Positions 13,211-64,000 of a stretch of DNA of 64,000 bases are shown piece by piece. The DNA is from Macrostomum lignano (taxonomy: Eukaryota), in contig NIVC01001540.1 in assembly GCA_002269645.1 (NCBI GenBank), positions 20,172 through 84,171 of the forward strand. Direction: 5' to 3'. Each line of letters opens with the position of its first letter. The first letter of the stretch is position 1. Under the pieces are notes generated by a model that worked only from the letters and a program-made list of their open reading frames with translations, did no database searches and had not been told where the DNA came from. A program made the translations under genes and the position numbers.

Positions 13211-13295
13211 TATAGATTCCATTTTATAGTTACAAAGCTATTTATAGTAAAATTCAGTGCTACTCATAGTAGTGTTTGATTTTCCGTGCATTTTG

Positions 13296-14999
13296 ATGTC
13301 TGACGAAAGTTTTATTGCCTACGCGGCGGCGGCGCCAAACTTGGCGCTAATTAAATACTGGGGCAAGCGAGACAGCAGGCTGGTGCTGCCGCTAAATAAC
13401 TCTATCAGCGTTACCCTTGACGACCAGCTGATGCGCACGGTTACTATTGCAACGGCTTCGCCAGAATTTGCCGAAGATTCTGTTGAGTTAAACGGCAAAC
13501 CGGCCGAGGTTACTGACCGGATGCGCGCTGTACTGCAGTCGCTGCGTCAGCGTTGCCAGCGGGGCCAGGACTTGGCCAGCTGGAAGGTGCGGGTTGCCAC
13601 CAGGAACAGCTTCCCCACGGCTGCCGGCCTCGCCAGCTCCTCTTCGGGTTTGTGCGCCTTTGCGGTTGCGGTCGCCAGGCTGTACGGAATTGTGGGCGAC
13701 GGCGGTTCGGACAGCTGCGAGTGAGTGTAGCTGTCAGCTGGGGCTGTCATCTTGTCAGCTGGGGCTGTCATCTTGTCAGCTGGGGCTGTCATCTTGTCAG
13801 CTGGGGCTGTCATCTTGTCAGCTGGGGCTGTCATCTTGTCAGCTGGGGCTGTCATCTTGTCAGCTGGGGCTGTCATCTTGTCAGCTGGGGCTGTTATCTT
13901 GTCAGCTGTGGTTGTTATCTTGTCAACTGGGGCTGTTATCTTGTCAGCTGTGGTTTTTATCTTGTCAGCTGGGGCTGTTATCTTGTCAGCTAAAGCTGTT
14001 ATCTTGTCAGCTAGGGCTGTTATCTTGTCAGCTGGGGCTGTTATCTTGTCAGCTGGGGCTGTTATCTTGTCAGCTAAAGCTATTATCTTGTCAGCTGGGG
14101 CTGTTATCTTGTCAGCTGGGGCTGTTATCTTGTCAGCTGGGGCTGTTATCTTGTCAGCTGGGGCTGTTATCTTGTCAGCTGTGGTTGTAATCTTGTCAGT
14201 CTAGCACCCCAACTGCACGCTCATTCCCTTCCTCCGCGCCGTCAGCGCCGACACCCTTCGCTGGCTCAGCACGGTGGCCCGGCTCGGCTCCGGCTCCGCC
14301 TGCCGCTCTCTGTTCGCCGGCTTCGCCGAATGGTCGGCCGGCCAGCGTCCGGACGGTGTGGACTCGACCGCCAGCCAGCTGGCCTCGGCCGGCCACTGGG
14401 ACCTGCGCGTCCTCGTCTGCGTAGTTGGCGCCGGCGCCAAATCGGCGCCGTCCACCCAGGCAATGGCGCGGACCGTGGCCACCAGCTCGCTGCTTCCGGC
14501 CAGACTGAGCTGCCTGCCCGACAGGCTGGCCGCGGTGCGCGAGGCGGTGGCCGGCCGCGACTTCGCTAGCCTGGCCGAGATGTCCATGCGGGACAGCAAC
14601 TGCCTGCATGCGGTGTGCGCGGACACCTACCCGCCCGTGCACTACCTGACCGACGCTTCGCGCGCCATCATCGACTTCGTGCACCGGCTGAACGAAGCCT
14701 CCGGCCGAGTCGTTCTCGGCTACACAGCGGATGCCGGCCCGAACGTCTGCCTGCTGGCCCAGCCGGCCGATGTACACCTGGCTGCTGGTTGTCTGCAGCG
14801 GGCCTTCGACATCGGCCCGGTGGTCGGCGACTTAGGCGAGGCGGCCGACAATTCGAAGGTTCCCTCAGGCTGGGCTGGCGACGGCAGCGAGGGGGCGACT
14901 GCGCGCCACCGGATCGAATCGCTGCTGATCTGCCGGCTCGGCCGGGGGGCGCTCGATATTCCACAGGCGGAGGCGGCCGCTTGGTTCGATTCTGACTGA
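13296..14999 (+). CDS. MVD: Diphosphomevalonate decarboxylase (2 exons, ~392 aa)
   Basis: Exons 13296-13720 and 14246-14999 (phase-2 intron, GTGAGT...GTCAG). Motifs: APNLALIKYWGKRD, LPLNNSISVTLD, NSFPTAAGLASSSSG, ARLGSGSACRS, MRDSN..HA.C.DTYPP, DAGPN. Confidence 0.95.
13730..14200. repeat. 21-bp minisatellite filling the MVD intron
   Basis: Unit GTCAGCTGGGGCTGT(C/T)ATCTT, ~22 copies. Confidence 0.95.
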
Positions 15000-28100: not shown

Positions 28101-31100
28101 TAAATCCCGATTCTCCCTAAATCCTGATCCCTCCCTAAATCCCGATTGTTCCTAAATCCCGATTCTCCCTAAATCCCGATTCTCTCTAAATCCCGATTCT
28201 CTCTAAATCCCGATTGTTCCTAAATCCCGATTCTCCCTAAATCCCGATTCTCTCTAAATCCCGATTCTCCATAAATCCCGATTCTCTCTAAATCCCGATT
28301 CTCCCTAAATCCCGATTCTCCATAAATCCCGATTCTCCCTAAATCCCGATTCTCCCTAAATCCCGATTCTCCCTACATCCCGATTCTCTCTAAATCCCGA
28401 TTCTCCCTAAATCCCGATTCTCTCTAAATCCCGATTCTCCCTAAATCCCGATTCTCTCTAAATCCCGATTCTCCCTAAATCCCGATTCTCCCTAAATCCC
28501 GATTCTCTCTAAATCCCGATTCTCCCTAAATCCCGATTCTCCCTAAATCCCGATTCTCTCTAAATCCCGATTCTCTCTAAATCCCGATTCTCTCTAAATC
28601 CCGATTCTCCCTACATCCCGATTCTCCCTAAATCCCGATTCTCTCTAAATACCGATTCTCCCTAAATCCCGATTCTCCCTAAATCCTGATCCCTCCCTAA
28701 ATCCCGATTCTCCCTAAATCCCGATTCTCCCTACATCCCGATTCTCCCTAAATCCCGATTCTCTCTAAATCCCGATTCTCTCTAAATCCCGATTCTCTCT
28801 AAATCCCGATTCTCCCTAAATCCCGATTCTCCCTAAATCCCGATTCTCCCTAAATCCCGATTCTCCCTAAATCCTGATCCCTCCCTAAATCCCGATTGTT
28901 CCTAAATCCCGATTCTCCCTAAATCCCGATTCTCTCTAAATCCCGATTCTCCATAAATCCCGATTCTCTCTAAATCCCGATTCTCCCTAAATCCCGATTC
29001 TCCATAAATCCCGATTCTCTCTAAATCCCGATTCTCCCTAAATCCCGATTCTCCCTAAATCCCGATTCTCCCTACATCCCGATTCTCTCTAAATCCCGAT
29101 TCTCCCTAAATCCCGATTCTCTCTAAATCCCGATTCTCCCTAAATCCCGATTCTCACAAAATCCTGATCCCTCCCTAAATCCCGATTCTCCCTAAATCCC
29201 GATCCTCCCTACATCCCGGATTCTCCCTAAATCCCAATTCTCCCTAAATCCCGATTCTCCCTAAATCCCGATTCTCCCTACATCCCGATTCTCTCTAAAT
29301 CCCGATTCTCCCTAAATCCCGATTCTCTCTAAATCCCGATTCTCCCTAAATCCCGATTCTCACAAAATCCTGATCCCTCTAAATCCCGATTCTCCCTAAA
29401 TCCCGATTCTCCCTAAATCCCGATTCTCTCTAAATCCCGATTCTCCCTAAATCCCGATTCTCCCTAAATCCCGATTCTCCCTAAATCCCGATTCTCCCTA
29501 AATCCCATTCTCCTAAATCCAAATTCTTCCTAAATCCCGATTCTCCTAAATCCCGATTCTTCCTAAATCCCAATTCTTCCTAAATCCCGATTCTTCCTAA
29601 ATCCCGATTCTCCCTAAATCCCGATTCTCCTAAATCCTGATTCTCCTAAATCCCGATTCTTCCTAAATCCCGATTCTCCCTAAATCCCGATTCTCCCTAA
29701 ATCCCGATTCTCTCTAAATCCCGATTGTTCCTAAATCCCGATTCTCCCTAAATCCCGATTCTCTCTAAATCCCGATTCTCCTAAATCCCGATTCTCTCTA
29801 AATCCCGATTCTCCCTAAATCCCGATTCTCTAAATCCCGATTCTCCCTAAATCCCGATTCTCCTAAATCCCGATTCTCCCTAAATCCCGATTCTCTCTAA
29901 ATCCCGATTCTCCCTAAATCCCGATTCTCTCTAAATCCCGATTCTCCCTAAATCCCGATTCTCTCTAAATCCCGATTCTCCCTAAATCCCGATTCTCCCT
30001 AAATCCCGATTCTCCCTAAATCCCGATTCTCCCTAAATCCCGATTCTCCCTAAATCCCGATTCTCCCTAAATCCCGATTCTCTCTAAATCCCGATTCTCC
30101 TAAATCCCGATTCTCCCTAAATCCCGATTCTCTCTAAATCCCGATTCTCTCTAAATCCCGATTCTCCTAAATCCCGATTCTCCCTAAATCCCGATTCTCC
30201 CTAAATCCCGATTCTCCCTAAATCCCGATTCTCCCTAAATCCCGATTCTCCCTAAATCCCGATTCTCTCTAAATCCCGATTCTCTCTAAATCCCGATTCT
30301 CTCTAAATCCCGATTCTCCCTAAATCCCGATTCTCCTAAATCCCGATTCTCCCTAAATCCCGATTCTCCCTAAATCCCGATCTCCCTAAATCCCGATTCT
30401 TCCTAAATCCCGATTCTCCCTAAATCCCGATTCTCTCTAAATCCCGATTCTCCCTAAATCCCGATTCTCTCTAAATCCCGATTCTCCCTAAATCCCGATT
30501 CTCCATAAATCCCGATTCTCTCTAAATCCCGATTCTCCCTAAATCCCGATTCTCCCTAAATCCCGATTCTCCCTAAATCCCGATTCTCTCTAAATCCCGA
30601 TTCTCCCTAAATCCCGATTCTCCCTAAATCCCGATTCTCCCTAAATCCCGATTCTCACAAAATCCTGATCCCTCCCTAAATCCCGATTCTCCCTAAATCC
30701 CGATTCTCCCTAAATCCCGATTCTCCCTAAATCCCATTCTCCCTAAATCCCGATTCTCCCTAAATCCCGATTCTCCCTAAATCCCGATTCTCCCTAAATC
30801 CCGATTCTCACAAATCCCGATTCTCCCTAAATCCCGATTCTCCCTAAATCCCGATTCTCCCTAAATCCCGATTCTCTCTAAATCCCGATTCTCCCTAAAT
30901 CCCGATTCTCTCTAAATCCCGATTCTCCCTAAATCCCGATTCTCCATAAATCCCGATTCTCTCTAAATCCCGATTCTCCCTAAATCCCGATTCTCCCTAA
31001 ATCCCGATTCTCCCTAAATCCCGATTCTCTCTAAATCCCGATTCTCCCTAAATCCCGATTCTCTCTAAATCCCGATTCTCCCTAAATCCCGATTCTCACA

Positions 31101-34100
31101 AAATCCTGATCCCTCCCTAAATCCCGATTCTCCCTAAATCCCGATCCTCCCTAATCCCGATTCTCCCTAAATCCCATTCTCCCTAAATCCCGATTCTCCC
31201 TAAATCCCGATTCTCTCTAAATCCCGATTCTCCCTAAATCCCGATTCTCACAAAATCCTGATCTCCTCTAAATCCCGATTCTCCCTAAATCCCGTATGTC
31301 CCTAAATCCCGATTCTCTCTAAATCCCGATTCTCCCTAAATCCCAATTCTTCCTAAATCCAAATTCTTCCTAAATCCCAATTCTTCCTAAATCCCGATTC
31401 TCCCTAAATCCCATTCTTCCTAAATCCAAATTCTTCCTAAATCCCGATTCTCCCTAAATCCCGATTCTCCCTAAATCCCGATTCTCCCTAAATCCCGATT
31501 CTCCCTAAATCCAGATTCTCCCTAAATCCCGATTCTCCCTAAATCCCAATTCTCCCTACATCCCGATTCTCCCTAAATCCCGATTCTCCCTAAATCCCGA
31601 TTCTCCCTCAATCCCGATTCTCCCTACATCCCGATTCTCCCTAAATCCCGATTCTCCCTAAATCCTGATCCCTCCCTAAATCCCGATTGTTCCTAAATCC
31701 CGATTCTCCCTAAATCCCGATTCTCTCTAAATCCCGATTCTCCCTAAATCCCGATTCTCCCTAAATCCCGATTCTCCCTAAATCCCGATTCTCCCTAAAT
31801 CCCGATTCTCCCTAAATCCCGATTCTCCCTAAATCCCGATTCTCCCTAAATCCCGATTCTCCCTAAATCCCGATTCTCCCTAAATCCCGATTCTCCCTAA
31901 ATCCCGATTCTGCCTACATCCCGATTCTCCATAAATCCCGATTCTCTCTCAATCCCGAATGTCCCTAAATCCCGATTCTTCCCGAATCCCAATTCTTCAA
32001 AAATCCCAGTTTTCCCATAAATCTCCCTACCGGATCCCGCAGCCGGCCCCGGTGTTGTTGGCAACGACTGTCCCCGTTCGACTCCGTGGCCCTGCAAGAG
32101 CGGCCAGTGCCTCTCGTTCGCTTTCATCTGCGACGGCCGGGCCGACTGCGTCGACGGCTACGACGAGGACAAGGCGCTGTGCACCGCCAGTGAGCAGCCT
32201 TCGGCGTTGTTGATTACTCAGCATTTGTCTATGGCCAAAAGCCCATCTGAGAAGCTGATAAATCCTTATTGAATGCGTAGCCTTCCGAGTATAGAAAAAT
32301 GGCGAAGGATCTGTTCCAATTGTGGACTTCTAAAAATAGCATCTGGACTTTGTATTAAAGCATTGGCTTGTTGCCAACAACAGCATCTGCAACTGCGACT
32401 TATTGGATGGGGTTGAGTTCCGATATGCTGGTTGGATAAGGGACGCCACCTGTCCAGGAGCTCTTTTTAGAAGTCCTGTGAACTCAGACTTGAAAACAAT
32501 CGTAATGACAGTTTTGGGGATTTCAGAAGACTTAGGAAGGATTCTGGAAGAACTGGGATTCGGCAAGAATTGGGATTCGGGAAGAATCGGGATTCGGGAA
32601 GAATCGGGATTCGGGAAGAATCGGGATTCGGGAAGAATCGAGATTCGGGAAGAATCGGGATTCGGGAAGAATCGGGATTCGGGAAGAATTGGGATTCGGG
32701 AAGAATTGGAATTCGGGAAGAATCGGGATTCGGGAAGAATTGGGATTCAGGAAGAATTGGGATTCAGGAAGAATCGGGATTCGGGAAGAATCGGGATTCG
32801 GGAAGAATTGGGATTCGGGAAGAATCCTGATTCGAGAAGAACTGGGATTCGGAAAGAATTGGGATTCGGGAAGAATCTGGATTCGGGAGACAAACTAATC
32901 GAAAGGAATGGAAATCGGGCATCAGACTTTCCAGTCCAGATGCTATTTTAAAAGTCTTTGCAAGAATGTTAATTTACAGCTGGATACTAGCCATTAGCTG
33001 GACTGGTGAACCCAGAGGTGGTCGGGCTTGGGTAGGGCCCATTTGTTTGCTGGAGTAGGTGGGAATTCTCCCGCTCAGTTTATAGTCAGTCAAACAACTA
33101 ACTCGACTCCATTAGCCTGATTGAGTCCTGCAGGTCAGTTGCGCTGCAAATTTATCTGTTTTATTGGGGGCGGCACCGCCCCGGCCCTCTCTGCTTACTT
33201 TGTCTCAGGGTGAGATAAAGGGGCTTGTTCTTCCACTTTTCAATCTCTCAGGGTGAGATTGTGAGACTTCTAACTTCTCAATTTTCAGAATCTTAAGATT
33301 CAGAATCTTCTACAATTATATTTAATCTCATGGTGAGAGTAGAGATTAACATACAGATTTGCATAGAGATTTATATATAGATTTAAAGAAAGATTGACGT
33401 AGAGATTTGCATAGAGATTTGAATAGACTGACATAGAGATTTGCATAGAGATTGACATAGAGATTTGCATAGAGATTGACATAGAGATTGACATAGAGAT
33501 TTGAATAGACTGACATAGAGATTTGCATAGAGATTGACATGGATATTTTCATAGAGATTGACGTAGAGATTTGCATAGAGATTGACATAGAGATTTGCAT
33601 AGAGATTGACATAGAGATTTGCATAGAGATTGACATAGAGATTTTCATAGAGATTGACATAGAGATTTGCATAGACTGACATAGAGATTTGCATAGACTG
33701 ACATAGAGATTTGCATAGACTGACATAGAGATTTGCATAGACTGACATAGAGATTTGCATAGACTGACATAGAGATTGACATAGAGATTTGCATAGAGAT
33801 TGACATAGAGATTTGCATAGAGATTTGCATAGAGATTGACATAGAGATTTGCATAGAGATTGACATAGAGATTTGCATAGAGATTGACATAGAGACTGAC
33901 ATAGAGATTTGAATAGACTGACATAGAGATTTGCATAGAGATTGACATGGATATTTTCATAGAGATTGACATGGATATTTTCATAGAGATTGACATAAAT
34001 TTTTTCATAGAGATTGACATAGAGATTTGCATAGAGATTGACATAGAGATTTGAATAGAGATTGACATAGAGATTTGCATAGAGATTGACATAGAGATTG

Positions 34101-41879: not shown

Positions 41880-42125
41880 CAGAGGGCAGCGTTGTTCCAG
41901 GCGATGGTCGAGGCCATCTTGCTGTACAACGCTGAGACCTAAACGCTGACGGACTCGCTGAAGCAACAAGTGGATGCTGCGCACCGCCTTCAAGATCTGC
42001 GACGAGCGAGTTTCCAACGAGGCACTGCAGTATCGCCGCGCCGGCCCGGTCCGTTCAAGCGACCTGTTGCGCCGTGAGCGAATCCAGCTTGCAGGCCACA
42101 TCAGCAGCGGCGAGTTGTGCTGCCG
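41880..42125 (+). mobile_element. Degenerate RTE-like LINE fragment (C-terminal RT region)
   Basis: [29 protein letters not shown] / [40 protein letters not shown], with a stop and frameshifts. Confidence 0.75.
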
Positions 42126-42126
42126 G

Positions 42127-42407
<281 letters not shown>

Positions 42408-43083: not shown

Positions 43084-46000
43084 ATGAACATTCTTCATAT
43101 TATCACTTTTGCCGTTAGCTTCGTCACACTCCCGTCGCAGTCGACATCACAGTCTGACAAAGCTTCATTTGACGATCTGGCGATGCACCTGCTGGGTCTG
43201 CGCAACGGTTCCTACAACAGGGATGCTCGGCCACCGCCTGACAACGGGCAGGCAAATACCGTGACAGTGTTTATTCAGCTAAACAGCCTGGTGAAGGTGG
43301 TGAGCAAAAACCGTCGCTTGCTATGACGCTTCATGAATTATATAGATGAATTTTTGCAGCAGGGACCGTCTCCACGCCTTCGCCTTCCGCGACATCGTCC
43401 TAAGTACCAGTGCTGACCCTGACTTTCTAGTCGTCAGGCATGAGCACATGCTGTCACACATGACCCTGACTTTCTAGTCGTCAGGCATGAGCACATGCTG
43501 TCACACATGACCCTGACTTTCTAGTCGTCAGGCATGAGCACATGCTGTCACACGTGACCCTGACTTTCTAGTCGTCAGGCATGAGCACATGCTGTCACAC
43601 ATGACCCTGACTTTCTAGTCGTCAGGCATGAGCACATGCTGTCACTCATGACCCTGACTTTCTAATCATCAGGCATGAGCACATGCTGTCACACATGACC
43701 CTGACTTTCTAGTCATCAGGCATGAGCACATGCTGTCACACATGACCCTGACTTTCTTGTCGTCAGGCATGAGCACATGCTGTCACACATGACCCTGACT
43801 TTCTAGTCGTCAGGCATGAGCACATGCTGTCACACATGACCCTGACTTTCTAGTCGTCAGGTATGAGCACATGCTGTCACACATGACCCTGACTTTCTAG
43901 TCATCAGGCATGTACACTCTCTGTGCCTTGGTGGTTGGCCCTCATGGGAGTAAATCACACGACAACCCCCTGTAAAATTTTAGCTCCAAATTAATGTAAT
44001 TAAATACGTAATTAAACCAGGGGTCGTAGCGCAAGAGTCAGACACATTTACCTGTGACAGAACAGCGGATTTTATTTCTAGATGAAGTTCGAGCAGAGCT
44101 TCAGTACCGATGAAGTAGCTGCAGAGAGGCAATCGCAAAGTGGTACAACGTATGTGATTTGATGAATACTGTGAGGTCACTCCAGACGATTGACTTTGTC
44201 GTAGATAAAATTCATGGCGAAGGCCTAATATTGAGCGGCGTTAGATTGTAGTCATGCTTGCTCTTACCTGCTTCTCCCTAATTGAATTATAATTTTTTTC
44301 AACTCCCAGGACTCATCTGCACAAGAGATCATACTGCAACTATGGCTATCTCTGGTGAGAATAAGTTTACAATAAAACAGTCATATGTGTTCTCATACTA
44401 GCTCTGTCTATACTGCATTGCAGGAATGGCTTGACAGCCGACTGTCATGGATGGACAAAGTCAATGCCACCGCAAATTCAACTAGCTACATTCTGGTGCC
44501 GGTAGAACGAATCTGGATGCCGGATGTTGCGTTCTATGATGTGTGAGGAGGAATTGGCAGACGACATTGATAGCTGTCAAAGGCCATAGACATATTTGTA
44601 GTACGCACTTTACCATAGATAGTTTCTGCTGCTAGCGTCCGTTAAGGTGGGGGAGCGAAGCCCCCATATTCTAACCATAGACAAATTTTTGAGACGGTAA
44701 AATAAGAGCAACGAGAGAAGATCAGAATAAGAGGGAAAAGAGAGACAAATTTAGGAGACCTTTGAGAAAAATATTTCCAATTATTAAATTATCAGAAAAT
44801 GTGAGAAAACGAGATTGCCATCAGCAGAGATTGTTCTTTGTGTTCAGTGATGACGTACCTTTCGGGGTTTCACCAAACACAAGTCGAACTGGGGAGCGGA
44901 CTTGGATGTAGGGCCGGGGGCTTTCGACAAGAGGCACCAAGAGAGTCACGACACATCGAGTCTAGTTGAACTGGCCGCTGATCAACATCAAGAAATCAAG
45001 GACACAGAGGCGACAGCGGTGGTGAATTCTACCCGAGGCTCGAACTAGGCAAAATGCGGCAAAACTTGAAGATTTGTTCGAGATACCATTCGAGTTCGTG
45101 TGTCTTACGAGTACAACACATAATGCGATTGGAAAATGCCTATCTCAGTTAGCTATTTTAGTAGCATTTCACACGGAAAGCTAGCTTGATAAGTCTGTGA
45201 GTGCGCCTCGGATCAACACACATGAGGCGTATCAGAAAAGTCCAGGTGGGTGGGGTACTGGAAGGTTTCTTCAGGAATACTCCGGAGCTCCATCGTCGTG
45301 GCGCTCCTGATGACTTCTATAGGTTGGAAAAACGAGTTCCTTTGAGCACTTCCTTGAGATTCGGGAATAGAAAAAGTCGCAGGGAGCTATAGGTCGCATA
45401 GGCGACTGCTTGACCAATGTCCTGCTGAAGGAAGCAAAAGTTTTTCTGAAAATAATAGCCTTAAGCTACGGGTGTGAATGAAAAAATAGTTTCACTAAAA
45501 AAGTGTATTGTCATATTTCGCCCCCCTTGCACCTACCGAACCGCGCAGCATGGAGGTGAAAGACATCACCGCTGCAGTCGCACCAGCGCTGTTGGAACGT
45601 AGCGGCAAAGTCCTGCGCACAGTTGGTCAAGTAGTGACTCTGAAGTGCGGCATGTCAATGCTGCACTTTCCGTACGATAAGCAGGTCTGCATCATCAAAG
45701 CGGCCACGATGATGCAGCGACCGGAGAAGATCAAGCTGAATGTTGAGCCGCACGGAAAAGCTCTGGACGAAGCGCTGGTCGAGTTTCTGGTCAAGAGCAA
45801 TGAATTTTGCATTGCGAATTTGAGTCTCCGTATAGTGCCAGCTGTGGGCTACGAGTACGCTGAGTTTTTAGTGAGCTTTCAGGTAAGTTTGCCGGAGACT
45901 TTTGATTCTGTTTGCTGTCAAGTTTGCTCTTCCATATTGTTCAGGTTGGATCATTTAAGAAAGCTCTCACGACAGAAGCCAAGCTAAAAACAGAATTCAC

Positions 46001-47048
46001 TTTTTATCAACAGCGCATGTCCAAGTTTTACGTAGTGAACCTCATCCTGCCCAGCATCCTGCTGCTCGCCATTTCCGCTCTCACCTTTCGACTGCCGCCA
46101 GAGTGCGGCGAGCGAGTCTCATTCAGCGTCACCATTGTGCTGTCAATGTGCGTGTTCCTGCAGCTCACTGGCAACTACACTCCAACGCAGAGCGAGTCCG
46201 TCCCCCTACTTAGTAAGCGTGCTGGCATTTTACAGCTTACTGTTCCATTTATGCTAGGGGTCGGTACACTTTTATTCTCAAAGGCCAGATAGAGAATCTA
46301 GCGCATGGCAGGAGCGAGGAAGAGAGGAGAGACGAGTGGAGAAGAGAGAAGAGAAGGAGAGGAGACGAGAGTAGGGGAAGTAGAGGAGAAGAGAGGAGAG
46401 GAGAGGAATGGAATGGAGTGGAGGGGAGTGGAGTGGAGTGGAGTGGAGTGCAGTGGAGTGGAGTGGAGTGGAGTGCAGTGGAGTGGAGTGGAGTGGAGTG
46501 CAGTGGAGTGGAGTGGAGTGGAGTGGAGTGGAGTGGAGAAAAATAGAGAGAGAAGAGAAGAGACAAACCTTGAGCGAGCCGGAGGCATTGTGAAGTTTCA
46601 AAGGATCCGAGGGCCGGATAGAGAGGCTTTGCGGTCCGGAGTTTCTCGACCCCTGATGTGTGTCCAGGACGCTTGTATTCACAACCACAATTAAACAATT
46701 TCAGCCTGTTACTACAGCATGGCGGTTGCCTTGACAATTCTAACCGTAGTTGGCAACGCTTTCGTCCTGAGCTGTCATTATCGACAGTTCAGCGAGTCGC
46801 GCGTTCAAAGCCGAGCCATTCGCCTGCTGTTTCTCAACCGGCTGGCGCTCTGCGGAATCAGCAACGACAGAAAAACTGTCGGGCCAACTCCGGACGATCG
46901 GGGAGTTTTGGAAAACGAATTCGCGATCGTGGCATCTGCGGCAGACAGCTGCTTCTTCCTGGTCATGCTGGCTGCCACAATGTCTCTCGCCATCGCCCTC
47001 CTAGTTGTTGAAACCTCCGTCTCCAGGAGCGATTGTCTGGGTGCCTAA
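43084..47048 (+). CDS. Divergent nicotinic-acetylcholine-receptor-like Cys-loop channel subunit, paralogue 1 (6 exons, ~418 aa)
   Basis: Exons 43084-43299, 44310-44354, 44424-44542, 45549-45882, 46014-46212, 46705-47048, total 1257 nt in frame. Signal peptide, YNRDARP, WLDSRLSW, IWMPDVAFY, Cys-loop CGMSMLHFPYDKQVC (C-x13-C), M1 FYVVNLILP, M2 GERVSFSVTIVLSMCVFL, M3, M4. Confidence 0.9.
43414..43912. repeat. 47-bp palindromic minisatellite (~10.5 copies) in receptor 1 intron 1
   Basis: Unit TGACCCTGACTTTCTAGTCGTCAGGCATGAGCACATGCTGTCACACA. No spacers. Confidence 0.95.
45215..45470 (-). mobile_element. Tc1/mariner transposase C-terminal relic in receptor 1 intron 3
   Basis: The minus strand gives frameshifted QSP..IAPCDF / LFPNLKEVLKGTRFS / IEVIRSATTMELRSIPEETFQ, matching the mariner YSPDLAP(S/C)DF.LFP.LK..L.G.RF region. 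Confidence 0.75.
46310..46562. repeat. GA-rich / (GGAGT)n tract in receptor 1 intron 5
   Basis: Direct observation. Confidence 0.9.
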
Positions 47049-47866
47049 GCATCCATCCATAAGTGCATACAAGCCTATCTTTACAATTTACTCGTACTTA
47101 CTGACGGTCATAACTAAGGTCTGATTAGGGTCTGACTAAGCGCAGTCAGTGTTTGATTACATAATCAACTCGTCTGCTAACTGAGAGCTACCGGGTGAGC
47201 GACCATCTACCTTCTGGACTCTCGGGAGGGGGACTGCGCTGCGGACACCGGCACCACCGGATCTCCCTGCGCGACACCGCAGCACTAGCTGCCCGTGGTC
47301 GGCAGGGGTTAGCGGAATGGTCGGCGACGCCTCCCCACTGTACCCGGATGCCCGGAACCTCCTGAAGCTAAATCAAGTCAATTAAAGATTTAACAATCAA
47401 AAAGGCAACATCAGAATACGCAGTTTTCAATTGTTTCAGTTTTTTCCAAATAATTCTATACTATCCGAAATATTGATGGAACTAATTTTGGTGTCGAATT
47501 ACTCTCTAGTGGCGCCTCTACAAGCTCTCATTAAACCACTTTGAAGTCCATTTTCCGAGAGGTTTCGGCCGGCTCTCGGGACTGAAACTCATAACAACCT
47601 CAAAACTACATTTATGGCACACTTATTATTTTAAACCACTTTCATTTTCTGGGAGTTATCGGAATACATTTCAACTTGATTTTACTGGACATGAAAAGAC
47701 GGTATTTAATTGAGAAGAAGGAAAAGACATGAGACCATAGACATAAAAAAGATTCGCATTGTTCAGTCTGTCTCCCCCTCCTTTAACTCGGCTTTAACCC
47801 ATGACTGATCTTGAAGCAAATTCTAAGCATATTGGCAAGGAAAAATGGAAGAAAGTTACATTTTAG

Positions 47867-48115
47867 CCAACTGAAGTTGACTTCAGTGGAGACTTCGCTG
47901 GAGACTACGAACCTAATCGGCTTTCGGCAGAAGGGCTAGATCAGCGTGATCAGAATGCTAATCGCGGCAACTTGGACAACATTAGAGATCTGAACGTGAA
48001 CACAAAGTCACCGACTACTCTTAAGCGAAACAAGTGGGCCGTTGAAGTGTGTAACCGTTGGCTTCAAGAGTCGAAAATCGAGTGCAATGTGCCTATCGAA
48101 GACATGAAGACAGAG
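47867..48115 (+). mobile_element. Possible Crypton/DUF3504-like N-terminal fragment
   Basis: The open frame has an acidic stretch followed by SPTTLKRNKWAVEVCNRWL..IEDM. This resembles the T...T.WA...F..W helix upstream of Crypton-type tyrosine recombinase domains. No catalytic part was seen. Confidence 0.35.
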
Positions 48116-48548
48116 GTTGTACTAGTTTCCACTTTTGTGGAACTTTATGCAGTACGCAATATGAATAATTCGTTTCTATGGCTGGCGCTGCTCTACATGC
48201 AAGTGAAGCTGCTACTGAGTCAATAGTTACTCTTCACTTCGGAGAAACCTGCAAAACTGTTTCAGCAAATAACTATGTCATTTAATGTGAGCCTCTATAA
48301 TCTTCATGTAGCTCCCCAGCTGCTGGTCTATTGGAAGTGGAAACCGCGGTACCGGTCGAAACCCGGGCTACAATGCAAGCCATTGGTTCGCTTATCAAGT
48401 CAGGTGGCCATTTTCATCAAACTTTAGCCGTGTAAATATGCTTGGCTCTCCCCAGACTGGTGGCAAATAAGCCCATTTAGTTGAACTAAAAGCAGACAGC
48501 GGGCGACTCTTCAAGCTGCCAATTCTGACCAGTCGATTCATTACTGCG

Positions 48549-50337
48549 ATGCGCGTCATCCCAGTGATTTTCCCTCTGGCTCTCTGCTGCACCTGCAACC
48601 TGACAGATGGGTTCGCGCCTTCGCCGGACGAAGTTTTGATGCGTGGTCTCGGACTGACCTCGGGCGGAGTCTACGTAGCTGGAGCCCGGCCGCCCCCTGA
48701 CAATGGCACCGCCAACCTAATCAACGCTTTTGTCCTGTTTGCGAGCCTGGTCAAAATGGTGAGACAGCGAGGCGTCAATCAATTTGTCATTCACGCGATA
48801 TGGTTATTCAAAACTTTTACTCTTCAGGACTCAACGGCGCAGCATCTGACTCAGCAACTTTGGCTATCGATGGTTTGACAATTTCAAAATTTGTTTTATA
48901 GTATTTATCTAATGTATGAGAAGTTATTAGTTTAATTTTCAAGTTTATTACACTTCAGAACTGGATAGACCAACGGTTATCGTGGCTTGGAAAATTTAAT
49001 TCCAGCTATGACCAGGTGAAAAGCATAATTGTTCCCATGAATATGATCTGGCAACCGGATGTCACATTTTATGACGTGTAAGACTACTCTAATCCATTAC
49101 AAAGTTTTATCTTTTTATAAATTATCGACACGCGTTCCGCTGCCATTCCAGCATAGAAGTTAAGGACTTGACCGCCGGTAAATCGCCCGCAAAGGTTTTC
49201 AGCAACGGTAGAGTGCACCAAATAGTCGAAGTCCAGGTAACCTCGAAGTGTCAGCTAAAGCTGCTGAACTTCCCGTACGACAGGCAGACTTGCGTCCTGA
49301 AGCTGGCCAACATCATGACCACCGAGAGCGGCGCTCTGCAAATTGGTTCACTAAATCCAAGCGACACTGTGACGACGTTTCTCACAGAGAGCAACGAGTA
49401 CTGTCTGCTCCGGATGAGCAACAGAATGAGGGACATGACTACCTACGCCTACATTGAGTTCAGTGTCACATTTCAGGTATAGTGCTAACTCAGAGTTGCC
49501 TCTGCGGTTAATAACTAGTGGGTCAAGGTAGTTGGTTCGATTCAAAATTAATTCATTAACGAGTGATCTGGTTGTATTGTAGAGAAGATCTACATTCTAT
49601 TTGGTGAACCTCATCCTGCCCAGCATCTTGCTGCTCGCCATCTCCGCTCTCACCTTTCGACTGCCGCCAGAGTGCGGCGAGCGAGTCTCGTTCAGCGTCA
49701 CCATTGTGCTGTCAATGTGCGTGTTCTTGCAGCTCTCTGGCAACTACACTCCAAATCAGAGCGAGTCCGTTACCCTGCTTAGTGAGTGTCATTTCGTTTA
49801 CAATTTTCATTATTGTTTTCTTTATTAACCATAACTGTCTCTGGCTACAGCGGGTTACTACAGCCTGGCTGTTGTCATGACAATGGCGAACGTACTCGGC
49901 AACGTTTTCGTTCTGGGCTGCCATCTGCGACAGCAAGCCGACACTCTCGTGGACAACAGAGCCGTTCGGGTGCTCTTTCTCAATCGATTCGTCCTGAAGG
50001 GCCTGCAAATTGGAAACTGCGTGAGAGTGACTCTCGACAAGCATTTGTTAGCTCATTGAAAAAGGCCCCACATGCTTTAGAAAAATCCCTCTCTGGCCAT
50101 TTGCAGGCCCAAGTCGGGAATTCCCAGCCAAATTCAGATCGATCCGAACGAGTTGCGGACGCAAATCGTGCGGCCGAGTCCGATCGGTGTAACGAATGGC
50201 GTATTGTGGCTCTGGCCGCCGACAGATGCTTCTTTGTGCTGTTTATGAGCGTCCTGGCCCTTCTTGTCGTGGCTCTAATTGTTATTGAGCTGACCGCATC
50301 CCGGCTTGACTGTCTCCGTGAAAGTCAAGATGTTTGA
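48549..50337 (+). CDS. Divergent nicotinic-acetylcholine-receptor-like Cys-loop channel subunit, paralogue 2 (7 exons, ~432 aa)
   Basis: Exons 48549-48758, 48828-48872, 48959-49077, 49152-49476, 49583-49781, 49851-50020, 50107-50337, total 1299 nt. Exons 2, 3 and 5 have the same lengths (45, 119, 199 nt) and phases as paralogue 1. Cys-loop CQLKLLNFPYDRQTC, M4 NEWRIVALAADRCFF. The last intron (50021-50106) is inferred to restore the M4 frame. Confidence 0.88.
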
Positions 50338-50631: not shown

Positions 50632-51710
<1,079 letters not shown>

Positions 51711-52579: not shown

Positions 52580-53043
52580 GACAACTGACTGTAAGACAAC
52601 TGACTGTAAGACAACTGACTGTCAGACAACTGACTGTAAGACAACTGACTGCAGGACAACTGACTGTAAGACAACTGACTGTAAGACAACTGACTGTAAG
52701 ACAACTGACTGCAAGACAACTGACTGTAAGACAACTGACTGTAAGACAACTGACTGTAAGACAACTGACTGTAAGACAACTGACTGTAAGACAACTGACT
52801 GTAAGACAACTGACTGTAAGACAACTGACTGTAAGACAACTGACTGTAAGACAACTGACTGTAAGACAACTGACTGTAAGACAACTGACTGTAAGACAAC
52901 TGACTGTAAGACAACTGACTGTAAGACAACTGACTGTAAGACAACTGACTGTAAGACAACTGACTGTAAGACAACTGACTGTAAGACAACTGACTGTAAG
53001 ACAACTGACTGTAAGACAACTGACTGTAAGACAACTGACTGCA
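52580..53043. repeat. 15-bp homogeneous minisatellite (~31 copies)
   Basis: Unit GACAACTGACTGTAA. Confidence 0.97.
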
Positions 53044-54224: not shown

Positions 54225-57200
54225 TCAGATATTCTCCATCAAAATAGCCACCTTGCGAACAATCTGCCTGTGCTTGCTGACCGGCCCTGAAAATGAGCAA
54301 TTTTCGATTGAAGATCGCAGTGCTTGAAATGCAACAGTTGCCAGGGTGGGGTTGAGTACGGCTTGTCGTGCGATTCACGACCACGAAGTTTGTGGGTGTA
54401 CCTGCTTACAGCCCCGTGACTGACTAATAGGCTCGTATTTAAGTGTTAAGTAAACTCGGTATAGCGGCCAATAGAGTCAGGCCTCACTAAATTACTAGGT
54501 AAATCCTTAATATCGATCCAAACGAGCTTACCTATGTAGCTGAGCAGCACTGGCAGGAACAGGAGACCGTGCAGAGCACCGAACAGCACGATACCCAGGT
54601 ACATGCGGAAGTAGAACACTCGGAACAGCTGCGACTTGGCAAAGCCCAAGATAATGATGCCGCCCAGCTTCGTCAGGGTGATGCCGGAAAACACGGAGCT
54701 GCCCATGTGGACGAAGCAGTCGCGCGCTTTCTCCAGTCGCGTCCTCTCAGCGGACACGGTAAATGCTCGGACCAGGTGAGAACAGAACTCCACCGAGATT
54801 CCGAGTGCCTGTTGAGTAAATTAATATTATTTCGTTTGTACTGAAGTACGTTTCGATAAAGTGTACCAAAGGCTACAGAAGGTCGAGACTAATAGTTACA
54901 GAAGTAAATATGATAATAAGTAGCTTTGTTGTTGCATGAGTAGTACTCACCATGACAAGATTAACAAGCGAGACGGCATTCAGCGATATGTTCCAGAAGA
55001 ACATCAGGCCCAGCATTGACAGCAGGATTAGGCCAATAGTCAGCAGAATGATGAACGTGGCAAAGAAGTCGAAGCCAAGCAGCATCAGGGTGACAAGGCC
55101 GATCGCTGCCAAGCAGACCCCCAGATTGATAGCCGTGTCCGTCACAATTGTGAGGTACTGCTCGTAGAATACGTAGAACACACTGTACGGGAACACCTTC
55201 AGATCGTCGCGTCCAGTCGTGTCCTTGAAGTGACTCGTGATGTCGTCCGAAATTTTTACGGCCATCTTGTACGCATTGATGAAATCATCGCCGTTGCGCA
55301 AAACCGAATGGTAGGTCATGTAATGAGAGGCGGACACCCCCACTGTGCGAGACTGCCGTTTCTCGCGATTAAGAGCCGCAGCATAGGCCGCATGGCCGCC
55401 CTTGGGGCAGGCGACGCCTGGATTGTCCTTGAGGAAAAAGTCGAGGTAGCGGAAAAACTCGCCCTGCACTGGCCAGCCGTCGGTTGTAAAATTGACGCCA
55501 CAAGGCGTGCAGTCGGCGGTGCGGTTCGATGCAGGGCAGAACGAGCCGGACTTGTGGTAGCTGCAGCAAGGCGAAGTCTCGCTCGGCTCAAGCCAGTCAA
55601 CGTAGTCATCAAGCCAGGAGCTCGGTGGGCTTACAATGTGCGAGTAGTTCGGCGCCTCAGCCAATTGAGACAGCTGATTCAGCATCGACTTCTGTGGGCA
55701 TCCCGCGCGACTGCAGATGAGATTTTGGTGCACCGGATTGGCGAAGTCCATCGGTCCGGAGACCACAAAGTAGACTGGCGGGCCGACGCTAAGGTACTTC
55801 TTGATGCCGTCAAAGTATGAGGTCACGTAACTGTCTTCTGGCATGCTCAGCTCTTGGTCCAATCCAACACGAATGTTGTGTACGCAGGCCAAGCACACGC
55901 AGGCCCAGCCGACAAAGATGCTAATTATTATTGGTCGAACCCAACGGTTGAAGATAAAGGTAGACAAGAAGCGCTTAAAGAATTGGAACAGCAGGCCTTT
56001 GCTCTCGGTCTTTTCTGGCTTATTATTCGCTGCCTTCTCCGCCTTCTCCACTTTCTTAGACGCACAGCAGCATAGTATATCCATCCGTTTAGCGGCTTGC
56101 CTTTTGGCGTCCAGCGATAGAACGGCAACAAAGCAACTTATCTGGAGCAGAAAGTCCAGCAGCACAGCCATGCCAGCGTAAAGCGCAAACACCCTCACCG
56201 CCGGCATGGGGGTAAAAGCGCCGAAAAAGAAGGCCACAGACTCGCTGAGGCTGCTCAACAGCATGCTGGGACCAACACGGCCGACCACCCGGGCCACCTT
56301 TGCCTCCACACTGTCTGCTCCGACGAAGTCACGTTGCAATGTGTGCACCAGAATGAATATGTTATCAACTCCGACTGCCAGAACAAGGAAGGGAACTACT
56401 TCGATGATTATCAGCGTGGCAGGAAATCCCAGGTAACTCCATACGCCCAGGGAGCAGAAAACTGCCACTAGAACAATCACAACTCCAACCAGGCCTAGTG
56501 TAATCTTTACATTAACTAGCAGCCGTCTACAGGATTTGTATTGACCAAGCGTCAACGTCACGTAGGCAAACATTAAGAGGTAGCTACCAAGAATGGTAAC
56601 TACATCTGAGTTGGACTCCCGTTCTAGCTCGTCTTGAATTGAACGCTCAGACGAATAACGCACGTCGAGTTCTTCGTGCGACTCGTTCTTAAACTTGTGC
56701 ATTACGTTTAGAAAAGCTTCCTCCCATTCCATGGCCATGCGAACCTGTAATTGAAGCAGATAAACACACGCTTGCAAATGCCAATCATTAAGCTATATAA
56801 TATTCGAATCAATATGACAATACTTTTACCTGCTCCGATTCCCGATTTGCGTCGTTATTAACGAGAAACGTGAGAACAATGGCGGTAGCATTGAGGTACT
56901 CTTTTCCACTGTAGCCGCCAAATACCACCCAAGGGTAGATCGGGCCGCCCCACTCTGAGAAGCAGCTCAGCTTCAGGTTGATGTCGCTATTAACGCTGAG
57001 CGGGTTTTTTGTGCAAGCAATCAGGTGTGTGACAAAGTCGGCGTAGGTCAGACCGAAGTCAAAATCTATGGCGACCTTGTTCAACGTGCTGGTGTTGGAC
57101 TGGAAGTAGCCCAAAGGACTTTGCACCGCGCAGGTTGAATAGCTAGGCGAAAGCGGCTTAAAGCAGATGTCAGTCAAGCTGATGTCTCGTTTCTTGGCTT

Positions 57201-60137
57201 TGCTCCACACCTTCATGTTAGTGATGTTTGTCTGCAAATTAAGCACCTTCTGAAGGAACTTTTTGTTAATAACTGGCCCGAATGCCCTGTGCACTGGAGG
57301 ATCAAAGTAAGGAGACTCTGGCTCGTGAATGTAGTGCGTCTGGTTTCTCGGGATAATGATCACCTGCTCAGTTCGGTAGAATGGTCTGAAATGACAAGAA
57401 AGGTTCGAGCGGTTCATCAGTGCACACTTAATGAGTACATCGTGCGTTGCATTGGCATCTCATATCAGGCCACTTTTTGAACTTAAAATAGCATAACCCA
57501 GCAAATTCAGACAGATATTTGGTTTAAGAGTGTGTCAAGTAACTGGCTTTCTGCCCGACACTACTTATGGTTAGAGAGGGGTTGGAGTGAGTAGAAGAGT
57601 AGCCTATTTAAAGCGGCTCTGTAATTCCAGGTAAATGCGAGGCGGCGCACCCAGCTATGGCAACAACAAAAAACTATATGCCAATTAAGTGAGTTGACCG
57701 ACACAGAGAGACGGTGTGTGGACAGATTGAATTACGAACGTATTATGGCAAGATTTGGAGCCTTCTTAAAACTTGCAAATGGTTTGTGCTTTTCTGAGCG
57801 CCGTTACAGCTCACACATAGGCGCCGCACCGGGACTGGGACGGAATTAAGAAAGGAATGCTGCAAAGAAAACATTACGATGGATTGCGGCCGCTCAGAAT
57901 GGCCTAATTTTTCTGATGCACGCTGGGTGGGAAGGGGGCCGTGTGGCATGACCGCCCCCGCCGAGACAGGTAGTCTAATGATGGGTTATGGGTGGGTCTA
58001 CGCTCATAGTGTCAGGTGGGTAAGACTCCTCACCCAACTCTCTGTACACAGGGTTTGACTGCACTAGATCCCACCCATTGTAATGCGAGGCTATTGAAAA
58101 TGTATCATATCTGAACATGATAGACTAGAAGCCGTCTATCGATATATTAATCTACCTTACAATTTTTATGCACTTAAGTGACTCCCCCCTACAATCTTAT
58201 GAATCGTGTTTAAAGTTACAATATATAATACGTTAAATAATTTTCACGCATAATAGCGGGTTGCCCACAGAACCCCTCAATAGCTGAAGAGAGAATTCAT
58301 ACAGCAGTCCTGCAGTCTACGCCCTTCCCTCCCCAAAGTCCTGGGACTGATCGAACCGTGGGGTGACTAACTGCAGCTGAAAAAAGCTTTAGCTTGCGCT
58401 GTATGCATTCGATATTTGCGCGCCGCGCTAAATTTCTTATACTCGTACCCTCGTCGCTTGCAAAGGAATCATGCCGATGCAGCGAAACGCGGCGCGCCAC
58501 GAACTACTATAGACACACTGCGCACAGGCTGGGACTGCCAGCCTAGAGAAGAAAAGAGAGAGGGAAAGAGAAAATTCTAGTCAAAGCCGGTCTAGCATTG
58601 TTAATAATTTGCTTTCGAAAACAGCGCTCAAGCACAACTCAAGGTAATGGCTGACCCTTAATGTAGAAGACAGAATTAAGAGGACAGATGAAGTGTAAGT
58701 ATTCACAAAGGAAAGTTACAATTTGCTTACCCAAAGTTTTTGTCAAAAAAGGCTTTCTGTTGGCGGGCAGTAGACTGCGGGGAGCTCCATAGCTCAACAG
58801 GGTCGGTAGTGACTTGGAAGAACAGAACGCCGCAGGACAGGGCTATGCAAACTACAAAGCTCAGCATGATGACGAGCACCGGATGCTTCGCCACGAGCAG
58901 ACCCCAGCTAGTAAAGGCGGCTTCGATTCGAGCTTCAATCTGCCCGCTGACGCGATCTGAGCAGTCGATTTCGGTATCGGACAAGCGACTGCCGTCAGTT
59001 AGGAAGGCCTGGCTACTCGGCGAGGTGAGGCCGTACGTCAATTCGGTGGATGTAACCTTTTCGGAGGACGCTGCTGAGTATGCAGCATTCGAATCCTTGG
59101 AAGATGTGCTAACTCGAGAGTTTAAGTTCTTACGGTGCGTTTGAGCAAAGAAATAAATGTTCCAGGCGGCGAAGACGACTAAGAATGAGACGTAGATGGC
59201 AGCCATGACAATGTACCAGCCGTCGATTCCCAGCACCTGCCAGGGTTTCGGATCGTTTGGAGTGTCTGGTTTCTTCGGGCAGACAGCTTGACAATCGCTA
59301 CAGGAGCAGGCAGCAACTCCTCGCTCTCGATCGCCAAGATGACACTGAACTGAGCTTTCATTCATTGGGCAGTGCATTTTACCATCGATAGTGAAGCATT
59401 GGTCCTCAAGGGAGAATTTTATGTCGAACGGAGCATACGGATTTTCGGCTGGACTACCCAAAAACTTAAACACGTCTTTCACGGTGCACGATTCCACGCT
59501 GACAGATCCGCACATTGCTGATATAGCTTTGCCGTTGCCGTGACTAACGCCTTTGCAGCTGTTGAAGAATGTGTGAGCAAAGTTGCTGCTGATGTTGTAG
59601 TTCACGCTTGTCACTGTATTTACGGATTCGTCGAAGCTGGTCGCCTGTAGGTACAAGCTTTGGTTCGGCGAGCAAGCCATGTTGCAGAACATGGATCGAA
59701 AATTTTTCCAACACGCTGGACAGCGCCTAAGTAGAAGGCCTGCGCGATCCATTTGGATGCTCAACGTTTCAATCTGACGCTCTGAGCAGCAAGTCACGAC
59801 GTCCCCTGAACTTCCAGAAGCGATTTCCGGGCAAAATGATCGTAGCAGAGACAAAGACTTTTGGTTGTTAAGAGGCTTCGCGGGCCCGTTGTATCGGCAA
59901 TTGATTGGATTATCCGTTGGGCTACGAGAGCACTCATCATACATAATGCAATCGGCAGAGGCCTAGAAAGAATAAGATGTTAGCACAGGCATTCATTTTA
60001 ATTTAATGTTTGGTACCCGCAGAGCATTTAATGTATTGAACAAAAGCATTAAAAAGACACGGAGAATCTCGTCATTTAAAACTCACATAACTCAGTCCAA
60101 GTGTTAATAGAAGGATCACGACGACCAAATATTTCAT
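54225..60137 (-). CDS. NPC1: NPC intracellular cholesterol transporter 1 (6 coding exons, ~1323 aa)
   Basis: Exons 60137-60087 (signal [17 protein letters not shown]), 59962-58731, 57385-56830, 56744-54951, 54808-54532, 54286-54225, total 3972 nt. Cys-rich NTD ([27 protein letters not shown]), [93 protein letters not shown]. The last exon is less certain. Confidence 0.95.
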
Positions 60138-62139: not shown

Positions 62140-64000
62140 ATTGTAGTAAATTTTTGTTTGTAATCAGGTAAAGTGGCTCGCTTGGCAAGTAAAATAAGAA
62201 GAAATCCCAAAATCAACATGTGGTTTTTTCGACGCGTTTCGCACACCAAGGTGCATCGTCAGATATATTGTTCGAAACGAAAGGTGTGAGTGTGCAAGGA
62301 TCATGTCAAACAACACATTTGATCCTTGCACGTACCAGCGCCAGCGCATCTTACCCTGCGGTAGCCAACCTGGTCAGCTCTACGGGGTCTGCAAGGTGCA
62401 CAAACCAGAAAAACCCCTCAGACCAATTGTTTCCATGGTCAACACCGCCGAATACGAGCTTGCTAAATACCTGGACTCGCTCATCAAACCTTGCATTTCT
62501 ACTGAATTCACCTCGAAATCCAACAGCGCTTTTCTGAAAGATCTTCAAAATTCGTGCTCTGACATCAAGAAGTCTGACATTCTCTGCAGTTTCGATGTTG
62601 TTTCACTCTTTACTAACATCCCCCTGAAACTTGCTATTGACCTCGCCACTGAATAAGTGTTTAAACGCAATCCTACCTCCATTTCTTTGTCTAAGGACTC
62701 TTTTAAAAAACTTCTTGGCTTTGCGACCTCTGGAATCTTCATGTTCAACAGTAAATACTACCGGCAAATTGAGGGCTGCGCCATGGGAAGTCCGCTGGCC
62801 CCTACTCTGGCTGAAGTCTGCTTGACTCATTGGGAAACCAACAACTGGATGTCCCTTGACTGTGCGCCCAAATTTTACAGACGCTATGTCGATGAAACGT
62901 TTGCCATCTTTGAAAGCAAGAACAAACTTGACCATTTCTTCCAGTCTATCAATTCCACCCATGACAATATTAAGTTCACCAATGAGATTGCTACTGACCA
63001 TAAACTTCCGTTCCTTGACCTTGACATCGATCTCAGCGGTGGGAACCTTTTCACCAAAGTTTTCCGCAAAAAAACCTTCACCAATCTCATTCTCAACTTT
63101 TATGCCGTGTGCCCCAGACAGTGGAAATCTGGTCTGATCAGATGCTTGCTTCACAGAGCCTACACTGTCTGCAACTCCTGGATCAACTTTGACCAAGAAA
63201 TTAGATTCCTGACCAAAATGCTCCAACAAAACGGTTACCCATCTGCCTTCATCCACCACAACATCCACAAATTCATTTCTGAAAGAGTGAATCACCAAAA
63301 AGTTTCCAAACCTGACCACATTGACCTTAGTGAACCAACCCTCATTCTCCCTTTCTTTGGCCATCCTTCTCTCACCTTCAAAAACAGGATTTGCAAATTA
63401 TTCCACAACTCTTTCAACAGCCAAATTCGCGTTATTTTCCGCTGTTCCAAAGTTGGCAGTTTTGTCGGTCGGTTAAAGTCACGTGTACCCCGTGCTCTGC
63501 GTGCAGGTGTTGTCTACTGTTTCAACTGCTCTGTTGACCAGAGCGTCTCCTACGTGGGGAAGACCAAAAGACACCTGCACACTAGAACCAGGGAGCACTG
63601 GCTCAAACCGTCGGCCATCCAAACCCACCTTTTGGAATGTAACAGCTGCTCTAATTGTACACAACGAAGAACGTTTTAAAATCATCGATCAATGCCCATC
63701 TGATCACAAGCTCAAGATCTTAGAAGCATTGTACATAAAAAACTAGTCGCCCACCCTTAATACGCAACTCCAACACAGTGGTGCAGGCCATGTTCTCCGT
63801 GTATTCTGAGTGAGAGAGCACTGACCTTGTTGTAAGCCAGTACTCATTCAATTATATTTTGTTTTCTGCCTATTGGTCTTCGCCCCGCCCTACGGACTAT
63901 CAACCTCCAACTACTCTGTACATACAAAATACTTACTCACCAGCTACTTGACAAATAATTTATAAATTCGCTTACTCACACCTTTCGTTTCAAACAATAT
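62140..64000 (+). mobile_element. 5'-truncated, inactivated Penelope-like retroelement (RT + GIY-YIG endonuclease) with inverted 5' pLTR; runs off the window end
   Basis: RT motifs QLYGVCKVHK..PLRPIVS, SFDVVSLFTNIP, YRQIEGCAMGSPLAP, RYVDET, LPFLD, VFRKKT. Endonuclease GVVY.FNC..SYVGKTKRHLHTRTREH..LEALYI. Lesions: in-frame TAA 62654-62656, frameshift ~63670, TAG 63744-63746. Positions 63974-64000 match the reverse complement of 62265-62291 at 26/27. Confidence 0.92.
62225..62270 (-). ncRNA. Minimal type I hammerhead ribozyme core in the inverted pLTR
   Basis: The minus strand at 62262-62231 reads CUGACGA U GCAC cuuggu GUGC GAAAC GC GUC: conserved boxes, a 4-bp stem II and a palindromic ACGCGU stem III. 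Stem I pairing is not obvious. Confidence 0.7.

Follow-up and report, generated by a model that had tools for sequence, protein, structure and literature searches.

How can two receptor genes whose silent sites have otherwise diverged to saturation share one short stretch of pore-coding DNA that is nearly identical? The question was raised by a tandem pair of Cys-loop (pentameric ligand-gated) receptor genes, here called A and B, on contig NIVC01001540.1 of Macrostomum lignano (assembly GCA_002269645.1, positions 20,172 to 84,171 of the forward strand), the 64,000 nucleotides of which are referred to below as the window and are numbered from their first base. The shared stretch, or patch, lies in exon 5 of both genes and, as judged from the sequences compared here, is probably best explained by non-allelic gene conversion between A and B. 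The hand-built gene models on which the comparison was based are as follows.

43084-47048, plus strand: gene A, Cys-loop receptor subunit of 418 aa; six exons at 43084-43299, 44310-44354, 44424-44542, 45549-45882, 46014-46212 and 46705-47048.
48549-50337, plus strand: gene B, paralogous Cys-loop receptor subunit of 432 aa; seven exons at 48549-48758, 48828-48872, 48959-49077, 49152-49476, 49583-49781, 49851-50020 and 50107-50337.

Both genes were complete, with an ATG, a stop codon and canonical GT-AG at all junctions, and were arranged in tandem on the same strand, 3.6 kb apart. Gene B had one intron more than gene A, located in the M3-M4 loop, and the two proteins were 51% identical. Pfam matches of gene A were to Neur_chan_LBD (8.7e-29) and Neur_chan_memb (8e-19), and the bit scores of A and B, 100.9 and 95.6 for PF02931 and 69.3 and 66.8 for PF02932, were all above the curated cut-offs. 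The Cys-loop (C-x13-C with an FPYD core) was found in exon 4, as CGMSMLHFPYDKQVC in A and CQLKLLNFPYDRQTC in B, and aligned to the Cys-loop of nAChR beta2, while the solved structures that aligned best to both proteins were those of nAChR beta2/alpha4 and 5-HT3A. In the pore, PPECGERVSFSVTIVLS aligned to SDCGEKMTLCISVLLA of nAChR beta2, with Glu at M2 -1', GER at the mouth of M2, Leu at 9' and no Pro-Ala-Arg motif. From their sequences, A and B are predicted to belong to the cation-selective (nAChR/5-HT3-like) branch of the family. They resembled the cationic receptors (nAChR subunits, 5-HT3A) in domain order, Cys-loop, M1-M4, GE(R/K) at the cytoplasmic mouth of M2 and the 9' Leu but differed from them in a very short M3-M4 loop and in two features of the ligand-binding region. 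Thus, no vicinal Cys-Cys pair (loop C) was present between the Cys-loop and M1 of either protein, and the loop B Trp (SWTYD in beta2/alpha) was replaced, the corresponding residues being ATMMQ in A and ANIMT in B. Neither A nor B had the characteristics of an alpha-type (principal agonist-binding) nAChR subunit.

The nearest database proteins were four entries from M. lignano (P0001-P0004), and the best non-flatworm relatives were hagfish 5-HT3A-like proteins with 29-31% identity; A and B are part of a flatworm-expanded clade. The UniRef fragment P0004 matched B at 146/149 residues of the extracellular domain (ECD) and at 59/59 residues of the patch. In UniRef entry P0003, the ECD segment encoded by exon 4 recurred as a near-duplicate after M4 (residues ~365-473). 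This entry appears to represent two tandem family genes fused in one annotation, which confirms the occurrence of the family in tandem arrays elsewhere. Within the 64-kb window, no copies of the family besides A and B were detected by blastn with the patch or by tblastn with all family proteins.

The subdivisions of exon 5 and of the adjoining sequence that are needed to describe the patch, all on the plus strand, are as follows.

46014-46034 (A, RMSKFYV) and 49583-49603 (B, RRSTFYL): first 21 nt of exon 5, outside the patch; pre-M1 and start of M1; 10/21 bases identical.
46035-46166 (A) and 49604-49735 (B): patch core, codons 245-288 (M1, M1-M2 loop, M2); 128/132 bases identical.
46167-46212 (A) and 49736-49781 (B): 3' part of the patch, codons 289-303 plus the first base of a split codon (end of M2, M2-M3 loop); 40/46 bases identical.
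46213-46704 (A, 492 nt, purine-rich with (GAGTG)n microsatellites) and 49782-49850 (B, 69 nt): intron 5.
46705-46787 (A) and 49851-49933 (B): start of exon 6, codons 304-331 (M3), with a weaker excess of silent identity.

The gap-free alignment of 46035-46212 with 49604-49781 contained 168 identical bases out of 178, so that the count of about ten differences given in a preliminary description of the window was exact. The differences were at positions 46059, 46073, 46121, 46158, 46167, 46186, 46187, 46202, 46203 and 46208 of A. Six were synonymous and the remaining four bases were in three non-synonymous codons (T/S, T/N and P/T); the four differences in the patch core were all synonymous transitions. 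When the window was searched against itself with BLAST, the patch was the sole strong nucleotide match between A and B, the other match being at the start of the next exon (46702-46840 versus 49848-49986, 72%). Alignment to nAChR beta2 indicated that the patch extends from VNL in M1 through the M1-M2 loop, M2 and the M2-M3 loop, as it had been labeled from the outset. The further statement that the pore exon is nearly identical holds for the 178-nt block but not for the exon, which is 199 nt long in each gene (46014-46212 in A, 49583-49781 in B) and begins with 21 divergent nucleotides; the coordinates originally given are those of a similarity block. The 5' breakpoint was sharp and internal to exon 5, between codons 244 and 245 (46034/46035), and was marked by a change in the proportion of shared amino acids with identical codons from 0/4 to 39/43. 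Toward the 3' end of the exon, identity fell off and ended at or before the exon-intron junction. All three forward frames were open over the pore exon for 71-128 aa (46039-46254 and 45959-46210 in A, 49608-49877 and 49567-49779 in B), probably as a result of its GC3-rich (i.e., rich in G or C at third codon positions) and Leu/Ser/Ala-rich codon make-up.

The contrast between the patch and the rest of the two genes was most evident from synonymous (dS) and non-synonymous (dN) divergence, estimated by region by the method of Nei and Gojobori and given here with the fraction of identical codons among shared amino acids.

ECD, codons 0-237: dS about 2.5, dN 0.61, identical codons 39/90.
First seven codons of exon 5, codons 238-244: dS saturated, dN 0.34, identical codons 0/4.
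Patch core, codons 245-288: dS 0.12, dN 0, identical codons 39/43.
3' end of the patch, codons 289-303: dS 0.25, dN 0.11, identical codons 10/12.
Start of M3, codons 304-331: dS 0.43, dN 0.25, identical codons 13/17.
Remainder of exon 6, codons 346-417: dS 1.46, dN 0.64, identical codons 14/30.

Per-exon dS, which had been suggested as a check, set exon 5 apart from the other exons (0.12-0.25 in the patch versus 1-2.5 or saturation elsewhere). Identical codons for shared degenerate amino acids numbered 49/55 in the patch compared with 67/146 elsewhere in A and B (Fisher p=9e-9), in agreement with the earlier observation that most synonymous sites of the patch are identical while the other exons differ heavily, the ECDs being 45% identical as proteins and 46-69% as nucleotides. 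The argument that purifying selection on protein is insufficient to explain this identity was also upheld. Thus, gene-wide codon usage predicted 19 identical codons among the 55 (P about 1e-17 for the 49 observed), and shuffling of B codons among positions with the same amino acid within the patch, a procedure that preserves its own GC3-rich codon usage, gave 30.4 ± 3.2, with 49 reached in 0/20000 shuffles. The same shuffle in the ECD gave 35.3 identical codons as opposed to 39 observed; the lack of a position-specific signal there indicates that silent sites of the ECD are truly saturated. A maximum-chi-square scan for silent identity gave codons 245-331 as its best window, and the observed value was reached in 0/1000 permutations. 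GC3 was 0.80 (A) and 0.84 (B) in the patch core versus 0.60 (A) and 0.65 (B) in the ECD, as GC-biased conversion would give, although a stronger codon bias would have the same effect and the evidence is therefore weak.

Similarity between A and B did not extend into the introns. In both local and end-free global alignments, all five shared introns matched no better than shuffled sequences, consistent with the dissimilarity previously noted for the introns next to the patch, and no similarity beyond the splice consensus was found in intron 5, which in A contains tandem repeats at 46310-46538. The power of the intron 5 test was 1.0 at K=0.15 and 0.9 at K=0.43 without indels, which indicates that a tract did not enter the intron. 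Beyond it, in the M3 segment, the excess of identical codons (13/17 against a background of 54/129, p=0.009) was marginal, and protein identity between A and B (17/28) was no higher than to other paralogues; an older or patchy conversion of this segment is possible. Taken with the position of the 5' breakpoint, the weaker excess in M3 means that the patch cannot be called exon-limited, as had been proposed. The long introns of gene A consisted mostly of repeat expansions, among them a 47-bp minisatellite (10.6 copies) in intron 1 (43414-43912), and all introns of gene B were 69-106 nt in length.

An independent view of the pore exon was afforded by UniRef entry P0002, residues ~367-463 of which matched 49989-49634 and 46199-46065 of the window on the minus strand, the tail of this protein being the antisense of the M3 and pore exons of a paralogue. 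The P0002 gene model is chimeric or mis-annotated. Its last 49 residues are a codon-registered antisense translation of the pore exon of a third paralogue, here called X, and each antisense residue in this register fixes a sense third position of X. For the 37 third positions that could be determined, A and B agreed at 33, X and A at 25 and X and B at 26, so that X shared 68-70% of third positions with A and B. Informative positions, with X as the sole third paralogue, were of the type A=B≠X in eight cases, B=X≠A in one and A=X≠B in none, an excess which suggests that A and B coalesce more recently in the patch than either does with X. Third positions of the X pore exon were almost entirely C or G, and X ended in C or G at the codons that are TTT, CGA, CCA, ATT, TCA, CCA and CTT in both A and B. 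These differences show that silent sites of the patch are free to change rather than held by constraint. On the evidence of this one additional sequence, the unconverted baseline of the exon is high, at about 70% of third positions, and comparison with the ECD therefore overstates the silent excess.

At the protein level, the 59-residue patch peptide of A was identical to those of P0001-P0003 at 48-52 positions (81-88%, or 7-11 differences) although the ECDs of the same proteins were only 35-43% identical to that of A. Ordinary purifying selection thus already holds the pore constant, and the earlier proposal that conversion homogenizes a pore and assembly module in a constant-pore, variable-sensor design was not supported by this comparison. 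The idea that conversion is selected for found no support; it is more simply seen as a by-product of the sole preserved DNA homology. All three amino acid differences in the patch (S289, N295 and T301) were private to B, while A kept the family consensus. They affect the last part of M2 and the M2-M3 loop, the element through which the ECD is coupled to the gate, and could reflect either re-tuning after conversion or a recent tract that stopped near codon 288.

These results can be accommodated by the following sequence of events. Genes A and B would be old tandem duplicates of a cation-type Cys-loop receptor gene, with silent sites that diverged to saturation outside one patch, and one of the two would have received from its neighbor, by ectopic conversion, the part of exon 5 that encodes M1 through the M2-M3 loop (about 130-180 bp), after which some 0.12 silent substitutions per site would have accumulated. 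A conversion-type transfer between tandem paralogues, as first suggested, agrees with the dS of 0.12-0.25 in the patch; the same values (0.12 in the core, 0.25 in the 3' part) show that it was not very recent, contrary to the original wording. The patch may be located here because no other segment has, under protein constraint and GC3-rich codon usage, remained similar enough at the DNA level for strands to invade and re-anneal. Since a repair tract requires homology at either end, its limits may be the pre-M1 codons upstream and the unalignable intron 5 downstream, where homology is lost. M3 in exon 6 may have been affected by a separate event, older or patchy, and B alone would have gained its three amino acid changes at the end of M2 and in the gating loop since the conversion. 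Conversion would then be a by-product of pore conservation rather than its cause.

The signs of a conversion tract observed in these genes were a local collapse of synonymous divergence beyond that expected from codon usage, a discrete breakpoint away from an exon boundary and, as weaker evidence, raised GC3, and the tandem, same-orientation layout favors ectopic repair. Several points weigh against gene conversion nonetheless. DNA was compared for two sequences only, look-ups of the products P0001-P0004 having yielded no others, whereas the classic proof would be incongruence between trees of the patch and its flanks across species. The 3' limit of the patch coincides with the end of the exon; a slight rise in silent identity flanks, in both directions, an intron that lacks homology, a pattern that selection on mRNA would also give; and codon bias and conservation account for part of the identity, as indicated by the third positions shared with X.

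A broader version of the same process, in which the pore exon undergoes recurrent, homology-limited and GC-biased conversion among many tandem paralogues, with the A/B event the latest, that involving X older and M3 affected occasionally, is considered unlikely. If it were true, the channel module would evolve in concert throughout the family while ligand-binding exons diversified freely, a constant/variable architecture like that of the protocadherins in an ion-channel family, and renewed divergence of the M2-M3 gating loop following conversion, as exemplified by B, would adjust its coupling to each ECD. Homogenization of the protocadherin type would be seen as a near-identical block in many paralogues; this was not found, given the presence of just two family genes in the window, the proportion of third positions shared by X and the 7-11 differences per 59 residues in the peptides of P0001-P0003.

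Selection on silent sites of the mRNA could in principle hold the M1-M2(-M3) coding sequence constant with no transfer of DNA, for example through codon choice for co-translational membrane insertion, exonic splicing signals or some other nucleotide-level element. Raised silent identity was indeed limited to coding sequence flanking an unalignable intron, GC3 was higher in the patch than elsewhere, and X, nearly all C/G-ending in this exon, shared more than two-thirds of its third positions with A and B. We nevertheless regard this explanation as improbable in view of the shuffle that preserved codon bias (30/55 versus 49/55 identical codons), the complete silent divergence of the first seven codons of the same exon and the departure of X from A and B at 11/37 third positions, at eight of which, including A/T-ending codons, A and B agreed. 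Moreover, the patch had no stable RNA structure (z +0.5 to +0.8 versus shuffles) and no conservation of alternative frames.

Three more specific candidates were rejected on related grounds, and a fourth on the basis of gene structure. A constraint from RNA structure was discarded because folding was no better than that of the shuffled sequences. Dual coding was discarded because the ten differences change five and nine amino acids in the two alternative frames and because the antisense frames of A and B contain stops. Codon bias alone was excluded by the within-patch shuffle. A single cDNA-templated conversion across exons 5-6 was rejected because A and B keep intron 5 at the same position and phase.

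The reverse history, in which A and B are young duplicates whose actual age is recorded in TM1-TM2, while conversion from distant family members replaced the ECD exons and the C-terminal part, is very improbable. Donors for such replacements do exist, since the family is large and tandem, with a fused model that contains two ECDs (P0003) and another that carries exons of a neighbor (P0002). However, several long replacements on both sides would be needed as opposed to one short patch, all introns, untranslated regions and flanks of A and B were unalignable, and the ECDs of A and B were still marginally closest to each other (45% versus 35-43%), with no sign of a foreign origin. Finally, an assembly or polishing artefact, in which reads of one paralogue corrected the other to yield a false shared patch in a repeat-rich neopolyploid genome, has only a small probability despite the many satellites in the window and reports of collapsed or mosaic sequences in M. 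lignano assemblies (PMC10733133), as ten differences remain in a neutral-looking pattern (the four in the core all being synonymous transitions), identity decays gradually in the 3' direction with no block end, reading frames and splice sites of both genes are intact, the B patch peptide with its three private residues recurs in the independent UniProt model P0004, which differs from B at three ECD residues, and mis-mapping presupposes that the true sequences were already very similar.

The remainder of the window was rich in satellites and contained parts of several other genes, which included the following.

54876-59944, minus strand: NPC1-like gene divided among three or more large exons; NPC1 N-terminal, middle luminal and sterol-sensing domains.
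62657-63676, plus strand: open frame of 340 aa with no Pfam hit, containing …YVDETFAIF… followed by a Cys-rich tail.

The second of these looks like part of a retroelement polymerase, to judge from its sequence. Exons were also noted for a diphosphomevalonate decarboxylase (13257-14996, plus strand), a thioredoxin-domain protein (19333-20019, minus strand) and a Ras/Rab-family GTPase (last exon, about 11440-11637, plus strand). The first was interrupted by a minisatellite with a 63-bp period (13732-14204), and the last directly followed a minisatellite that was open in several frames. A satellite array (25391-32023, ~6.6 kb) consisted of copies roughly 92% alike and was flanked by an inverted, diverged (~75%) stretch of the same repeat at 32538-32890. 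Gene A was preceded by a (TGTC)n tract (42127-42407), and gene B was closely followed by 1078 bp of perfect (TAGA)n repeats (50632-51709); a minisatellite with a 15-bp unit was located at 52580-53041. A single other pair of dispersed repeats was present in the window (4679-4820 and 41899-42027, 75% identical). It contained an open frame that, from its translation alone, resembles the C-terminal part of a reverse transcriptase from a retroelement. A short inverted match was noted between 62265-62291 and 63974-64000.

Short-tract ectopic conversion is known from tandem duplicates such as the globin, RHD/RHCE, CYP21A2/CYP21A1P and opsin genes. Like the tract proposed for A and B, those in these systems are a few hundred bp long, have discrete breakpoints, depend on local homology and occur between closely linked tandem genes. 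However, the known pairs are similar over their full length, introns included, while A and B are saturated outside the patch, so that a tract is possible only in one conserved coding block. Another parallel is provided by the clustered protocadherins of fugu, zebrafish and human, for which regional gene conversion was inferred from silent-site identity and GC3 (PMC1852091 and references therein). In that case as in the present one, tandem paralogues have one coding part homogenized at silent as well as other sites, with raised GC3, and divergent N-terminal recognition domains. The fugu protocadherins differ in that many paralogues share blocks of several hundred bp to kb that are >99% identical and lie in one large exon (PMC1852091), whereas A and B are a single pair with an intron-bounded patch of about 180 bp and 94% identity. 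A search of the literature on gene conversion in Cys-loop, nicotinic and ligand-gated channel families yielded no directly relevant report.

Regional conversion between tandem paralogues is already well documented, and A and B are probably a further instance of it rather than evidence of a new mechanism. For studies of the family, the practical consequence is that the M1-M2 exon should be dropped from trees or dN/dS scans of flatworm Cys-loop receptors, or treated apart, because it is misleading for orthology and dating. For the biology of these genes, the pair would represent a small and clean case in which protein constraint keeps an island of DNA homology where ectopic repair still acts between otherwise saturated paralogues.

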